From assembly GCA_028826165.1 (NCBI GenBank), contig JAPDFW010000011.1, positions 558,001 through 622,000 of the forward strand: DNA of 64,000 nt. Direction: 5' to 3'. The translations under genes and the position numbers were made by a program. Of this stretch, positions 1,216 through 46,531 are shown in pieces (the first letter of the stretch is position 1; each line of letters starts with the position of its first letter). A model generated the notes under the pieces. It saw nothing but the letters and a program-made list of their open reading frames with translations, searched no databases and was not told where the DNA came from. The stretch comes from Anaeramoeba ignava BMAN. Lineage: Eukaryota > Protista > Anaeramoebae.

Positions 1216-4200
1216 TTATTTATCTGAGACTCCATCTTTAACAATACTATCTTGAACTTCAAATTCTTCATCATCATCCATTGTTTTTCGAATATAATCA
1301 AGATCTGTAACAATAAATTCATCAAGAGTTTGTAACTTTTCTGTTAAATTTGTAACATCTTTAATTTTGCTGATAAGTTTTTCTGACATTTCAGATGTAT
1401 TATAAGGTTCTGGATCATCAAAGAAAGAAACTTGACCTTCTTGTTGATCAATCTTTGCAAAGACTTCACCTTTTTCAATCTTTATTTATTTTGAATTTAT
1501 TTTGAATTTATTTTGAATTGAATTTTGAATTGAATTTATTTTGAATTGATTTTGAATTTATTTTGAATTAAATTTATTTTGAATTTATTTTAATTTATTT
1601 TGAATTTATTTTGAATTTTGAATTAAATTTTGAATTAAATTTTGAATTTATTTTTGAATTAATTTTGAATTTATTTTGAATTTATTATTTTAAATTTATT
1701 TTGAATTTATTTTGAATTAATTTTGAATTAAATTTTGAATTGAATTTTGAATTTATTTTTAATTAATTTTGAATTTATTTTGAATTAATTTTGAATTTAT
1801 TTTGAATTTATTTTGAATTGATTTTGAATTGAATTTTGAATTAAATTTATTTTGAATTGATTTTTAATTTATTTTGAATTAATTTTTAATTTATTTTGAA
1901 TTAAATTTTGAATTTATTTTTTAATTTATTTTTAATTATTTTTGAATTGAATTTTGAATTTATTTTGAATTAATTTTGAATTAAATTTTTAATTTATTTT
2001 TAATTGAATTTATTTTGAATTTATTTTGAATTAAATTTTGAATTTATTTTTGAATTTATTTTTGAATTTAATTTTAAATTGAATTTATTTTGAATTGATT
2101 TTGAATTTATTTTGAATTAATTTTGAATTTATTTTGAATTGAATTTATTATTTTGAATTTATTTTGAATTTATTTTTTAATTAATACCATATCAAGAATA
2201 TAAAACTCAGCTTGTTGAGCAGATTTCAAATTAAATTCTTTTGCAATTTGTTCAAGAGGTAATTTAATATAAGTTTTAGTAAGTCTTTGGATACCTCTTC
2301 TAATAAGACTCTGAGCGCATTGTTTAGCGAGACCAATATTCTTATCTTTTTCGAAGATTTCATTATGAGTAGCAAGACACATATCAAGCTGACCCATATC
2401 ATGAGTATCATAAGCCTTAGCGAATTCTTCATAAGGTTTGCAGAGATTCTTTAATAAACGAACAACAACTGGTGAAGTATAACGAGGAAGTGATGGAGCC
2501 TTTCCAAATGCTAAAATGTGTGCGAAAATGTACTTCTTGTAACTTTCTAATACTATCGCAGATAATGCTTCTCCAGGAACTGTTATCGCTTGCTCAAAAA
2601 AATCTGTTGCATCTCGCCATCTCTTTAATACTCCATATATTATCCCTCCATAATAATAATAAAGAAGTACGTCTTTTACAGTAATGCTCAATTTCTTAGT
2701 ATCAATATCATAAACATCATTTTCAAGAACTATAAACCAAATTATAAATAAAATTATAAATTAAATTATAAATAAAATTATAAATAAAATTATAAATAAA
2801 ATTATAAATAAAATAATAAATAAAATTATAAATAAAATTATAAATAAAATTATAAATAAAATTATAAATAAAATTATAAATAAAATTATAAATAAAATTA
2901 TAAATAAAATTATAAATTAAATTATAAATAAAAATTATAAATTAAAATTATAAATTAAATTATAAATAAAAATTATAAATAAAATTATAAATAAAATTAT
3001 AAATAAAAATTATAAATTAAAATTATAAATAAAAATATAAATAAAATTATAAATAAAATTATAAATAAAATTATAAATAAAATTATAAATAAAATTATAA
3101 ATAAAATTATAAATAAAATTATAAATTAAATTATAAATAAAATTATAAATAAAATTATAAATAAAATTATAAATAAAATTATAAATAAAATTATAAATAA
3201 AATTATAAAAAAAAAAAAAAAAAATAAAAATAAAAATATAAAATAAAATTATAAATAAAAAAAATTATAAATAAAATTATAAATAAATTATAAATAAAAA
3301 AAATTAAATTATAAATTAAATTATTAATAAAATTATAAATAAAATTATAAATAAAATTATAAATAAAATTATAAATTAAATTATAAATAAAATTATAAAT
3401 AAAATTATAAATAAAATTATAAATAAAATTATAAATAAAATTATAAATAAAATTATAAATAAAATTATAAATTAAATTATAAATAAAATTATAAATAAAA
3501 TTATAAATAAAATTATAATTCTTGGTTTTTTTTTATTTTTTACTTGGTAAAGCTGCTCGATAATTGCGTGTATAAAGACAAACAAGCATAAAATGACTAT
3601 GAGATGGTGTAATTAATTCAGGAACTGTTTGTAAAAGTGGAATTCCTTTTTGTAATGGATAAACTGCTCTTTGTGGAACTTTTAAATCAAAAGCTAATTG
3701 TGTCATTCTAGTTAAGCAATTAGAATCTAAAATAAAAAAAAAAAAGTTAAAATTATAAATAAAATTATAAATAAAATTATAAATAAAATTATAAATAAAA
3801 TTATAAATAAAATTATAAATTAAATTATAAATAAAATTATAAATAAAATTATAAATAAAATTATAAATAAAATTATAAATAAAATTATAAATAAAATTAT
3901 AAATAAAATTATAAATAAAATTATAAATAAAATTATAAATAAAATTATAAATAAAATTATAAATAAAATTATAAATAAAATTATAAATTAAATTATAAAT
4001 AAAATTATAAATAAAGTTATAAATAAAAATATAAATTAAATTATAAATTAAATTATAAATTAAATTATAAATAAAATTATTAATAAAATTATAAATTTCC
4101 AAATAAATAAAATTATAAATAAAATTATAAATTAAATTATAAATAAAATTATAAATAAAATTATAAATAAAATTATAAATAAAATTATAAATAAAATTAT

Positions 4201-4594
4201 AAATTTCCAAATAAATTAAATTATAAATTTCCAAATAAATTAAAATTATAAATTTCCAAATAAATTAAATTATAAATTTCCAAATAAATAAAATTATAAA
4301 TTAAATACACCATTCAGGCATAATTTGAACTTGATTTTGAGTTGCACGAGGAATAAAACGTTCAAGTTGAACAAGATATTGTTCAGGATTTGTAGAACGA
4401 CTTTGGCCTTTCATTGAAAGTAAGAACATTTTACCAAGAGTATGCTTTGAATCCTCAAGTTGACCTATCATTCCATCAATAATTTGGAAATTCTTTAAAA
4501 CTTTGTCTTTTGATTCATTTAATGCTTTGCGAAGTTTATCTAAATCTTTTTGGTTTCCTGAAAGCTGAACAATTTGTTGAAGAAGTTTTTCCAT
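1216..4594 (-). CDS. CSN3: COP9 signalosome subunit 3 (PCI domain), 4 exons (~4594-4309, 3726-3544, 2729-2188, 1479-1216)
   Basis: LYYYYGG.IY, FEQAITVP..ALSAIVLESYKKY, KNIGLAKQ, IQRLTKTY..L.L PCI signature. GT-AG junctions keep the frame (W-Y, P-I, M-I); ends ...GVSDK-TAA. Confidence 0.9.
2735..4300. repeat. 12-bp satellite AAATAAAATTAT filling CSN3 introns 1 and 2
   Basis: Same unit on both sides of exon 3544-3726. Confidence 0.9.
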
Positions 4595-4824
4595 TTTGTT
4601 TTTTGTTTTTTATTTATTTTGTTTATTTGTTTTTGTTTTTTAAAAATAAATGAGAACTGAAAAATGAAAAAAAAAAATGAAAAAAAAAATTATAAAAAAA
4701 ATAAATAAAAAGGAGAAAAAAAATAAAAACAAAAAATATAAAAAAGAGAAATTTTTTTTTTCTTCTTTCATTTTTATTAAATTAAATTAAAATTTAATAA
4801 TAATTAATTAATTAAATAAATTAA

Positions 4825-7275
4825 ATGAGAAAATCTAGTTTAATTGATGCTAAATTTGCTGGAACAACTCAATCTCAAAATTGTACTTTAATTATCACTG
4901 AAGGAAATGCTATTCAATCACTTATTTTCTTTTCTCTAAATGAAAGCAACAAAGATTATTATGGAATTCTTTCTATAAGAGGAAAGATAATGAATATTCG
5001 TGGAGCTCGATCAGAAACTATTAAACAAAATGAGGAAATTCAATTAATAAAAAATTCATTAGGATTAAATTGGGAAAATATTGATTCACAATTAAATCAA
5101 CTTAGATATGGACATTTAATGATAATTAGTGATAGAGACTCAGACGGTTTTCATTTTACAGGTCTTATCATCAATTTTATTCATAAATTTTGGCCTTTTT
5201 TAATTAGAATTCCTGGTTTTTTATTGAGGTTTAATTGTCCAATAGCAAAATCTGTTTTTAATCAAGAAATCAAATATTTTTTTGGATTTCAACAATTGAA
5301 TCAATGGAAAAACCAAATCACTAATGAGAATGAATGGAAAATCAAATATTATCCAAGCGTAACCTCATTTACAATCTCAGAAATGAAAGAATATTTGGAA
5401 AAAATCCCTAAATTTTATCAAGAATTTATTTTTTCAAATGAAAAAGATATGGATTTAATTGACTTGTTATTTAATCCTAAAAGATCAACTGAAAGAATAG
5501 AATGGATATCAAAGCAAACTATCAATACACCAATGAATTGGAATTTACCTGCTTTGAAATACTCAACTTTTTTCAATGAAGAAATGTTTTTTTATATCCA
5601 AAACGATTTTCAACGTGCAATTCCTTCAATGGTAGATGGTCTCAAAGTAAACAAGAGAAAAGTTCTTTTCACTTGTTTGAAAAATGATTTCACGTCAGAA
5701 ATTAAACTCCAGCATCTATCAGCAGCAGTATTGATAAACACAAACTTCCCTTATGGAGAATATTCTCTATCAGCAACAATCACTTCATTAGCACAGGATT
5801 GCATTGGTTCAAATAATATCCCATTACTTCTCCCATTAGGCCAATTTGGCACCATTTTATATTCTGGAAATGATTCAGGAAATTTTCATCATTTATCTAC
5901 AAAATTATCTCCAATAACTCGCTTTATTTTCAGAAAAGAAGACGATCCACTTTTAGAATATATCGATGATTTTGGCATGAAAATTGAACCCAAAGTATAT
6001 TATCCTATTATTCCTCTTGTTTTGGTGAATGGAGTTGAAGGGATCAGTATTGGAGTATCAACAAGAATACTTCCATATAATCCTCGTGATATTGCTGAGA
6101 ATTTAAAAAGGAAAATACAAGGAAAGGAATTGTTCCGAATGAAACCATGGATTAGAGGGTTTCGTGGAATAACTGATTTGGATATTGGCGAAGCAACAAA
6201 GGATTCTAATTATGATCTTGGTAAATGTTTTTTAAAAGGTGTTTGGGAGAAATTGGATGATACTCATTTACAAATAACTGAAATACCTTTATATTCACGA
6301 TATTCTTCAATAATGAAATATCGCGAATTCTTAAATTCTTTACTTCCTGAACAAGGCAAAAATTTAATTCTTGATTTCAAAGAAAATCATACTCAAGAAT
6401 CAATTTGTTTCACAATTTCTCTTTTACCTCAACAAATGGAATTTATTGAGCAAATTGGAGTTGAATCTGTTTTTCAACTTGAATCAAAAATTAGTCTTAA
6501 TAATATAAATTTACTTGATGAAAATGAAAAAGTAAAACAATATTCAACTCCTGAGCAAGTTATTGAAGATTTTTATAATTTTAGAAGAAAGATTTATATT
6601 TTGAGAAAAGAATATATTCTTAATAAATTGAAGAATGAGCTTTCAAATCAAATTGAAAATGAAAATCAAAATCAAAATCAAATTCAAAATCAAATTCAAA
6701 ATCAAAATCAAAATGAAATTGAAAATCAAAATCAAAATCAAATTGAAATAGAAAATCAAATTGAAAATCTAAATCAAAATCAAAATCAAAATCAAAATCA
6801 AAATCAAAATCAAAATCAAAATCAAAATCAAAATCAAAATCAAATTGAAATGAAAATCAAAATCAAAATCAAAATCAAATAGCAAAATCAAATTCAAAAT
6901 CAAAATCAAAATCAAAATCAAAATCAAAATCAAAATCAAAATCAAATTCAAAATCAAAATCAAAATCAAAATCAAATTCAAATTCAAAATCAAAATCAAA
7001 TTGAAATAGAAAATCAAAATCAAAATCAAAATCAAAATCAAAATCAAAATCAAATTCAAAATCAAAATCAAAATCAAATTGAAATAGAAAATCAAATTCA
7101 AAATCAAAATCAAAATCAAAATCAAAATCAAATTGAAATAGAAAATCAAAATCAAATTCAAAATCAAAATCAAATTCAAAAACAAATTCAATTAATTCAA
7201 GAAACTTCTATTGAAACAATTTGGGAAAATGAAATTAATGAATTTCTTTTTGAATTAAAAAAATTAAACATTTAA
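4825..7275 (+). CDS. Degenerate DNA topoisomerase II-like protein (Toprim-WHD-tower core only; no ATPase, no catalytic Tyr); frameshift near 6850 in the NQ repeat
   Basis: [78 protein letters not shown]. After the repeat the frame resumes ...[15 protein letters not shown].. and ends at TAA 7273-7275. Confidence 0.85.
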
Positions 7276-44257: not shown

Positions 44258-46531
44258 ATGACAGCACCAGTTAATTTAGAAAATCCAAAAATATTAAAAG
44301 ATATTGGGAAAATTAGAGAAGAAATGTATGATCAATTTGTAAGAATAATATCAAGAGATGAAGGGAAAAAAACTATGATTTTTGATGAAGAATTATTAAT
44401 TCCATTAAGTTTAATAGTTAAACCAGAAGTTTTAAGAGTTAGTTTGAACAAGCATTTACTTTAAAATTAAAATTAAAATTCATTTTCAAATTAAAATCAA
44501 AATTAAAATTAAAATTCATTTTCAAATTAAAATTAAAATTAAAATTAAAATTAAAATTAAAATTCATTTATAAAATTAAAATCAAAATTCATTTATAAAA
44601 TTCATTTTAAAATTCATTTATAAAATTAAAACTAAAATTCATTTTGAAAATTAAAATTAAAATTAAAATTCATTTATAAAATTAAAATTCAAATTAAAAT
44701 TCAAATTAAAATTCATTTTGAAAATTAAAATTAATATAAATAAAAAAAGGCAAATGGTGTAGAAAAAATTGCATCGCTTAAAACACCACCACAAAAAAAT
44801 GATATGAAAATCTTCATATTTCTTGTGCGACCTAAAATGGATCTAATGCTTCAAATTGAAAGATATGTAAAATTTTATGACATGGACGAAGATCAAAATC
44901 GGAAGCAATTCTTTGTATATTTTGTACCACGAAAAACGGAGATTTGCGAGAACATTCTAGCGCAAAGAGGGGTTAAAGGGGGGTTAGTAATACGAGAATT
45001 CAAGATGGACATAGTTCCTTTAGATGAAGATTTATTGTCAATGGAATTCGAAGAATCGTTTAAGGAAATCATTGAAGGAGACATCACAAGTCTTTATGAT
45101 ATCGCAACAGCAATCCACAAAATCCAACGGTTTTTTGGATTGATTCCAAATGTAACTTCAATTGGCAAAAATGCAAAAGCAGTTTCTGAAATTTTAGAAA
45201 GATTGCGATATGAATCAATTATCGACGAGTCACTCGAACCCAAAATACAGAACCTTGTGATTATCGACCGCACCGCTGACATGCTGACTCCGATGGCAAC
45301 ACAACTGACTTATGAGGGGCTTGTTGATGAGTTATTTGGGATTAATCATAGTTTTATTGATTTAGAACCTGAGTATTTAGGCAAAAAGGGGAAAGAAAAG
45401 GAAAAATACCCGCTCAATTCTAATGATCTTGTTTTCGAAGAAATAAGGGATTTGAACATGGGAGAGGTCATGTCGTTCCTTCAAAACAAGGCGAAGTATA
45501 TTAGTGAATCATACGACTCACGACATCAAGCAAAAACAATCCACGAAATGCGAGACTTCATTCGGAAATTGCCGACGCTTCAGCAAGAACATCACTCGCT
45601 GGAGCTGCATTTCAAAATAGCCGAGGAAATCATCAACAGGACTCTCAGCAAACAAACATTCGTGAGCAGAATGGAGACAGAAATCAACCTGCTCACAGAA
45701 TCAACATCCGCTTTGGAGATGATCCAGGAAATGATTTGGAGAGAAGAACCAATTGTCAATGTTCTGAGACTTCTTTGTATGGAATCAATCGTCAATAACG
45801 GTCTAAAACCAAAGGACTTCGATCTTGTGCGCAGAGACATCCTTCAAGCCTATGGATACAAATACATATTCACTTTGGACAAAATGGAAGAGCAACATAT
45901 GCTCAATAAAGAAGATCCTTTAATAAAAAAAAACAAGAAGAAAATGTTCAGATTCACGTTCCCATTTCTGCGCAAAGAACTGAATCTGGCCAACGATAAC
46001 TTCTTAGAAACTGGTGATATCACTTCCGTTTTCTCTGGATATGCGCCTTTAAGTATCCGTTTGATTCAGAGACATTTGGAAAGACCTCCTCAATTTTATA
46101 ATCAAAATCCTTTTGATTTTCTTAAAGATGCTCCTTTTTATTTTCTTAGGCAAATACCCGAAAAAAAGGAACGGTTTTATTATAACCTAAAAGACACAAA
46201 AACAAACCCAGAAAGAAGAGAGAGCATCAATACTAATATCAACACAAATTCAATTTCAAATGCCAATCTCAGTACTAATATTCGTGATAATGAAGACAAA
46301 AATCAAGATTTTGATGAAAATTTGGATCAAGAATTAAATACTGAAAAAGAAGAACAGCAAAAATCTATTTGTCTTGTTTTCTTTGTTGGAGGTGTTACTT
46401 TTGCTGAGATTTCTTCGCTCAGAATTTTATCTCAAATGGAAAATAGTCGTTTTGAATATGTTGTTGCTACAACAAGATTAGTAAATGGAAATACAATGCT
46501 TAATGATTTCATTGAATCTTTAAATGATTGA
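44258..46531 (+). CDS. VPS33: Vacuolar protein sorting 33 (Sec1/Munc18 family), 2 exons (intron 44438-44749)
   Basis: IFLVRP, FVPRKTEICE..L, VPLDEDLLSME, IIDR.ADMLTP.ATQLTYEGLVDELFGI, SGYAPLSIRL, VFFVGGVTFAEISSLR. Confidence 0.92.

Follow-up and report, generated by a model that had tools for sequence, protein, structure and literature searches.

A third topoisomerase II gene of Anaeramoeba ignava, lacking the catalytic tyrosine, may encode a noncatalytic DNA-binding protein

INTRODUCTION

Can a type IIA topoisomerase lose its ATPase, its catalytic tyrosine, and its C-gate and still be kept by selection, or is a gene in that state simply dead? The question is raised by a plus-strand open reading frame (ORF) at positions 4825 to 6882 of a 64,000-nucleotide stretch of the genome of the protist Anaeramoeba ignava BMAN (GenBank assembly GCA_028826165.1, contig JAPDFW010000011.1, positions 558,001 to 622,000 of the forward strand; the whole stretch is called the window here). 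The ORF starts with ATG, runs for 685 codons to a TAG, and corresponds to the DNA-binding/cleavage core of topoisomerase II (Top2), with His-His in place of the catalytic Arg-Tyr. Few eukaryotic enzymes are as conserved as type IIA topoisomerases: the tyrosine was present in 387 of the 389 homologues that we retrieved, and the arginine preceding it in 388 of them.

An original prediction, made from the letters of the sequence, had described this copy as a descendant of Top2 rather than a working topoisomerase and had offered three functions for it, namely, a DNA-binding or DNA-bending protein, a dominant modulator of true Top2, or a Tyr-independent Toprim nuclease. The descent and the predicted loss of topoisomerase function are borne out below, with neither the GHKL ATPase and transducer nor the Arg-Tyr pair present. 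With moderate confidence, we take the copy to be a third, fast-evolving Top2 gene that has been under selection and whose product would be a noncatalytic, Top2-derived putative DNA-binding protein. The genome in which it lies is 80.65% A+T and was assembled from Nanopore and Illumina reads; its proteins share a mean identity of 37.3% with those of A. flamelloides, the one sequenced relative (PMC11550330).

RESULTS

The ORF is a Top2 core without an ATPase

Searches of both domain profiles and known structures identify the product as a Top2 core. In Pfam, the 685-codon ORF matches DNA_topoisoIV (PF00521) at residues 264 to 663 with an E value of 4e-72 and TOPRIM_C (PF16898) with an E value of 9e-18; the match to Toprim (PF01751) is weak, at 17.8 bits and under the cut-off of 23.1. 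When the PDB was searched with phmmer, residues 6 to 606 aligned almost gaplessly with eukaryotic Top2 cleavage cores, the top matches being 6ca8 (E value of 1.4e-128) and the yeast structure 3l4j (4e-119). In these alignments the N terminus of the ORF falls on the linker immediately N-terminal of Toprim, in agreement with the Toprim boundary at which the gene had been predicted to begin, and nothing equivalent to the GHKL ATPase or the transducer is part of the frame.

Upstream of the ORF, there is little sequence in which such a part could be encoded. The divergent neighbor is the first exon of the gene for COP9 signalosome subunit 3 (CSN3), at 4301 to 4594 on the minus strand (Pfam COP9_hel_rpt, E value of 2e-9), and the two starts are separated by a 230-bp A+T-rich spacer (4595 to 4824) with no plus-strand ORF of at least 60 amino acids. 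As had been noted from the sequence, this spacer is too small for an ATPase exon.

We also searched the whole genome (42.8 Mb in 147 contigs). Three loci match the Top2 A-subunit family: two full-length genes on contigs C76 and C106, here called Top2A and Top2B, and the present copy. The original prediction had asked for a full-length paralogue and for an ATPase supplied in cis or by a stand-alone partner. Two such paralogues exist, and a profile search for the Top2-type transducer family PF00204 found no stand-alone ATPase partner of the Top2 type in the genome, its only matches being in the two full-length genes.

Every cleavage-site motif is altered

The substitutions in the copy fall most heavily on the parts that would form the active site. 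In Toprim (residues 1 to 135, 4825 to 5229, plus strand, as are all features of the copy), EGDSAK has become EGNAIQ, PLRGK has become SIRGK, and DGSHIKG has become DGFHFTG; identity to the Top2 consensus in this domain is 0.48, compared to a minimum of 0.59 among canonical enzymes. The most degraded part is TOPRIM_C (residues 136 to 260, 5230 to 5604), where the consensus identity is 0.30 versus a canonical minimum of 0.42 and YKGLGT reads YPSVTS (5350 to 5367). The winged-helix domain (WHD), placed by alignment at residues 261 to 370 (5605 to 5934), has FPYGE for YHHGE (5746 to 5760) and GTI for GTR and contains the codons CAT CAT at 5887 to 5892, which encode His355-His356 in place of the catalytic Arg-Tyr. 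The replacement of Arg-Tyr by His-His and the motifs EGNAI, YPSVTS, and FPYGE had all been read correctly at the outset, as the alignment confirms.

To put these changes on a common scale, we defined near-invariant columns as those at least 95% invariant among 106 canonical Top2 sequences (n = 133). Of these, 37 are altered in the copy, every cleavage-site motif included, compared to 0 and 1 in Top2A and Top2B of the same genome.

The tyrosine of FPYGE was considered as a relocated nucleophile, and this was ruled out: two homologues with a tyrosine at that place, P0175 (Zasmidium cellare) and P0246, retain Arg-Tyr. These two proteins have Pro-Tyr or Ala-Tyr at the His-His of YHHGE together with an intact catalytic pair, and thus a tyrosine at this position is tolerated in apparently intact enzymes.

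The metal site presents a more mixed picture. E26 (4900 to 4902) and D103, D105, and D107 of the DRDSD motif (5131 to 5145) are all present, and G108, H110, and the lysine of PLRGK are further retained nearby. The claim that the metal site was kept therefore holds for the four acidic residues, but the adjoining DSAK has become NAIQ, and their retention is not significant, because 72% of the near-invariant columns are retained in any case and four of four would be kept with p ~0.27 (0.72^4). As far as the alignment can tell, retention of all four acidic metal ligands alone appears to be no more than chance. The DNA-intercalating isoleucine, also predicted to remain, is found as Ile407 in GISIG for GIGTG (6040 to 6054), inside the conserved half of the protein.

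Divergence is uneven and does not resemble neutral decay

Of all the results, the uneven conservation of the domains is the most informative. Scored by their match to the canonical consensus, relative to the level expected of canonical enzymes, residues 1 to 370 (Toprim, TOPRIM_C, and WHD) reach 0.63, under all 71 working Top2s, whereas residues 371 to 612, which make up the tower, shoulder, and descending coiled-coil arm (5935 to 6660), reach 0.90, within the range of working Top2s, 14 of the 71 scoring lower. None of 20,000 simulations of uniform decay reached the difference seen between these two parts. It appears that constraint on the catalytic half was relaxed or its sequence remodeled, while the tower/arm half stayed as constrained as that of a genuine Top2.

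Within the domains, conservation is graded by site. Retention of the canonical consensus declines stepwise with the conservation of the site, from 72% through 56, 46, and 34 to 20%. Retention of the ancestral residue, inferred where Top2A and Top2B agree with each other and with at least one A. flamelloides copy, falls in the same manner, through 62, 44, 30, and 14% in residues 1 to 370 and through 74, 69, 52, and 29% in residues 371 to 612.

The open frame itself is also informative. Neutral decay was simulated in 300 runs by mutating the core of the organism's own Top2A with the base composition of the window. On average, 16 stops had accumulated at 72% amino acid identity and 33 at 41%; every run gave at least 7 stops, and none was stop free. 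The copy has one TAG within an otherwise open frame of 816 codons, and the other five frames of the ORF contain 30 to 61 stops per 609 codons. The G+C content at the three codon positions (0.37, 0.30, and 0.17; GC1 > GC2 > GC3) follows a coding pattern, with GC3 within the range of the neighboring genes.

Because conservation is both domain asymmetric and site graded, most of the divergence seems to have arisen under selection. Together with the stop simulations, this suggests that, at least for most of its history, the copy was not a neutrally decaying pseudogene.

A repeat array stands in place of the C-gate and contains an in-frame TAG

Both full-length paralogues carry globular C-gate elements between the two arm helices. 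Of this region the copy retains only the start and the end of the arm. Alignment to Top2A and Top2B shows that, in place of the globular dimerization elements, it has about 180 to 190 residues of N/Q/I/E repeat, encoded by an array of the hexamer AAATCA that was delimited with Tandem Repeats Finder (91 units, 547 bp, 6645 to 7191). Repeats are found in Top2B of A. ignava as well (C106, L008 2377 to 7281, minus strand): it has an N/Q/E-repeat insertion of more than 100 residues within its core, at the site of a short basic loop in Top2A, and a tail with several hundred residues of S/K repeats. A stretch of NQNQNQ in the C-gate loop of Top2B is a possible seed of the array in the copy.

The TAG that ends the ORF lies within this array. 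A scan of the hexamer phase showed that the codon phase is constant from 6645 to about 6851 and resumes from about 6878 to 7190. Between these, an island of about 30 nt (6852 to 6882) is one base out of phase; the loss of 1 nt is compensated by the gain of 1 nt, and the TAG is created at the end of the island (6880 to 6882). Beyond it, the frame continues from 6883 to a TAA at 7273 to 7275 and is the sole open frame in 7170 to 7275. Its last 34 codons (7171 to 7272), in the frame of the main ORF, encode the conserved end of the ascending arm helix of Top2, and this C-terminal tail is 56% identical to that of Top2B across 18 residues. The gene had originally been drawn from 4825 to 7275, with about 610 uninterrupted codons. 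That range is indeed a single frame if the one TAG is read through, but the frame is not uninterrupted, and its open stretch is 685 codons rather than 610.

Two ways of disposing of the TAG were considered and rejected. A standard intron cannot remove it, because there is no GT dinucleotide in 6600 to 7275, and reading it as a sense codon finds no support, other ORFs of the window also ending in TAG. Either the TAG is a recent lesion or the Nanopore-based assembly is in error here; an indel error is plausible because the cancelling 1-nt indels sit in a low-complexity array.

The copy most likely arose within the A. ignava lineage

Top2A and Top2B are 70% identical, and the copy is 41 to 43% identical to either. 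In a tree of the full core, its branch measures 3.98 substitutions per site versus a median of 0.39, and placement was impossible. The tree of residues 361 to 612 is more useful, since there the branch of the copy (1.20) is not unusually long. Its topology is (copy,(Top2A,Top2B)), with an ultrafast bootstrap (UFBoot) value of 93 and an SH-like approximate likelihood ratio test (SH-aLRT) value of 87, and the trio joins three A. flamelloides Top2s (68/96). Most likely, and with moderate support from these trees, the copy arose by duplication within the A. ignava lineage before Top2A and Top2B split. Top2A and Top2B pair with each other, and the three A. flamelloides Top2s cluster together, suggesting that Top2 duplications took place separately in the two species of Anaeramoeba. 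Shared rare residues were tried as a further clue to origin and were uninformative, being dominated by A+T-rich sequences.

No closer relative of the copy was found in an exhaustive search of 1.84 billion cluster representatives, in which the best match was 42% identical; a word-indexed search for proteins of 377 to 1199 amino acids also gave a best match of 42%. Little weight attaches to this absence, since identity to the one sequenced relative is 37% on average, and it does not make the gene young, given the depth of the genus.

The predicted fold is that of a Top2 core

Structure prediction had been proposed as a check on the copy, and it returned a Top2-core fold. The AlphaFold2 (AF2) model of the 685 residues has a mean predicted local distance difference test (pLDDT) score of 91.3 and a predicted template modeling score (pTM) of 0.85, and it superposes on DNA-bound Top2 cores with a template modeling (TM) score of 0.82 and a root mean square deviation of 1.9 to 2.2 Å. 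In the model, the arm helix extends into the repeat (residues 576 to 655). Because the input alignment consisted of 71 canonical Top2 cores, the model speaks for compatibility with this fold and nothing beyond.

Other features of the window

Downstream of the CSN3 first exon, positions 3001 to 3500 have a G+C content of 0%, and a long array comes next, with FIYN repeats as its minus-strand reading (ORF 3533 to 4234); the tract from 3001 to 4234 is probably an intron or an intergenic microsatellite. Very long ORFs of 738, 1712, and 1444 amino acids lie between 18133 and 29819 on the minus strand, and that of 738 amino acids, with a BEACH domain and a WD40 propeller, belongs to a neurobeachin/Lvs-type gene. 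A Sec1-family ORF at 44804 to 46528 on the plus strand is 100% identical to A. ignava Vps33a KAJ5080378.1; its identity to a second Vps33a paralogue of A. ignava is only 44%.

DISCUSSION

What might be done by a Top2 that has lost its gates? The sequence suggests that the copy is incapable of strand passage, the N-gate, the tyrosine, and the C-gate all being lost. ATP hydrolysis should be impossible because the GHKL domain and the transducer are absent, and a covalent 5′-phosphotyrosyl DNA intermediate should be equally so because Arg-Tyr is His-His and EGDSA, YKGLGT, YHHGE, and the arginine of GTR are altered. We propose that a lineage-specific Top2 duplicate in A. ignava came to keep only the DNA-binding/cleavage core and in this way became a pseudoenzyme. 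Selection would have kept the frame open and preserved the tower, the shoulder, and the coiled-coil arm, including the isoleucine that bends the G-segment, with the catalytic parts of Toprim and the WHD left to drift. Duplex DNA may then be bound, and probably bent, through the groove between WHD and tower without being cut. With a helical N/Q/I/E repeat added to their length, the arms could substitute for the C-gate as an oligomerization or spacer element.

Several observations weigh against a selected, DNA-binding product. Of 30 conserved basic positions, 11 are lost, which could weaken DNA binding. If the in-frame TAG is real, it deletes the ascending arm helix. The open frame of residues 1 to 370 may persist merely by its position upstream of the selected C-terminal half. 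The confidence of the AF2 fold is driven by the alignment of canonical Top2s. No protein from the locus is present in the collections searched, and no run listed as RNA was among the sequencing runs found. Finally, no orthologue was found; identity to the sole sequenced relative is about 37% on average.

Some of these observations would be expected of a gene that, after a long functional life, is now dead or dying, that is, an unprocessed pseudogene in early decay, with a real TAG and a truncated or absent product. We consider this possible, though distinctly less probable than a gene still in use. Such a death would account for the TAG flanked by two indels and for the loss of all three gates or catalytic features, and it is in keeping with the long terminal branch in the full-core tree, with a GC3 of 0.17 that is close to the genomic background, and with the missing protein model and RNA run. 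It fits less well with a single lesion in 816 codons, where 16 to 33 stops are expected under neutral decay, or with conservation that differs by domain and is graded by site. Moreover, a Nanopore-based assembly (PMC11550330) may well contain indel errors in a low-complexity array such as the one around the lesion, and even the 685-residue product would still hold every folded domain.

The retained metal ligands bring up another reading, that of a Toprim nuclease independent of Tyr or an enzyme cleaving by means of histidine, in which the E/DxDxD metal center would work with water or with His355/His356 as the nucleophile. We think this unlikely. It draws on the retention of E26, D103, D105, D107, G108, H110, and the lysine of PLRGK, but the four ligands among these are kept at chance level, given how many invariant sites are retained overall, and substitutions abound around the metal site and the scissile phosphate (in DSAK, at the two histidines of YHHGE, and at the arginines of GTR and of Arg-Tyr). 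Toprim and the WHD are also the least conserved parts of the copy, the opposite of what is predicted for a selected active site. More improbable still is the full form of this idea, in which the copy is expressed and cuts DNA by means of the Toprim metal center together with water or with His355/His356 through a phosphohistidine intermediate. If true, it would be a eukaryotic Top2-derived nuclease with a chemistry new to the type IIA fold.

Hydrolytic nucleases with Toprim domains do exist, in the OLD family and in JetD/MksG of the Wadjet systems. Like the copy, these have a Toprim metal center beside a winged-helix-type DNA-binding part and no covalent tyrosine chemistry. They differ from it in belonging to prokaryotic defense, in being related to topo VI-A/Spo11 or to OLD, and in having conserved active sites, whereas the Toprim surroundings are where the copy is least conserved.

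Inactive subunits of dimeric enzymes frequently act as dominant modulators, and the copy is of the same fold family as both full-length paralogues. It could therefore be envisioned to form mixed dimers with Top2A or Top2B, poisoning or tuning them. However, the C-gate, which is the stable dimer interface of Top2, has been replaced by repeats, the N-gate is absent, and what remains of the DNA-gate interface lies in Toprim and the WHD, the most diverged domains; identity to Top2A and Top2B is only 41 to 43%. With the C-gate lost and the DNA gate degraded, a modulator is less likely than the original prediction had it, and we would place it slightly below the Toprim nuclease. Of the three functions first proposed, the nuclease in turn has only the four acids to draw on.

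That the copy is really a working Top2 core distorted by sequencing or assembly, with His-His an error, is so improbable as to be excluded for practical purposes even in a Nanopore-based assembly (PMC11550330), given that His-His is one of 37 altered near-invariant positions scattered across the core, that the CAT CAT codons are outside any homopolymer, and that DNA runs from two studies contain 61 to 94% of the sampled words of 4825 to 6640. Run X4, from the second study (40 million letters of contigs), contains 61% of these words; if this run is RNA, the gene is expressed.

How does a noncatalytic Top2 core compare with what is known? A literature search found no paper describing a Top2 pseudoenzyme. 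The eukaryotic Top2 cores of known structure (6ca8, 4fm9, 2rgr, and 3l4j) have the same order of domains from Toprim to the coiled-coil arm, the same metal ligands, and the same intercalating isoleucine, with 34 to 37% identity to the copy in structural superposition and about 40% in sequence alignments. Those cores are laboratory fragments, whereas the copy is a natural stand-alone gene, with His-His for Arg-Tyr and repeats at the C-gate. The premise that strand passage needs both the tyrosine and the ATPase gate is outdated as regards the ATPase, since the core of human TOP2B without this part still binds DNA and passes strands (Bandak et al. 2023, PMC10853770); the core used in that work retains its tyrosine. 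Residual strand passage, as reported for the human core, cannot be taken for granted in the copy, because the tyrosine, the full cleavage site, and the C-gate, all kept in the former, are missing in the latter.

Caenorhabditis elegans has in CIN-4 a Top2-like protein that reportedly lacks the ATPase part. CIN-4 has been named an orthologue of Top2 (PMC5584148), is encoded by a second Top2-like gene beside that for full-length TOP-2, and has a genetic role in chromosome segregation (Stanvitch and Moore 2008, cited in PMC11631511). There is no sign of a common origin of CIN-4 and the copy, which clusters with the Top2s of A. ignava itself. The only other proteins without the tyrosine among the 389 homologues come from the plant Tanacetum coccineum (P0227, GJS29791.1, and P0098) and have RF and TL for the Arg-Tyr pair. 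Their Toprim motifs are degraded too, including a change of E to K in EGDSA. Unlike the copy, they retain some N-terminal sequence, their match starting at residue 189 or 296, and they are of independent origin; possibly they are a second Top2 lineage without the tyrosine, or else misannotated pseudogenes.

Should the copy prove to be freshly dead, it would be a clear case of stepwise, domain-by-domain decay of a Top2 gene, in a genome whose A+T content is among the highest known in eukaryotes. Should it instead be a selected, noncatalytic DNA-binding protein, as we favor, it would constitute a natural experiment on the noncatalytic parts of Top2 alone, that is, on DNA binding and bending, scaffolding, and oligomerization through a repeat arm. 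Whether Top2 has structural roles is an old debate, which could be put to the test if one of these roles had its own gene.

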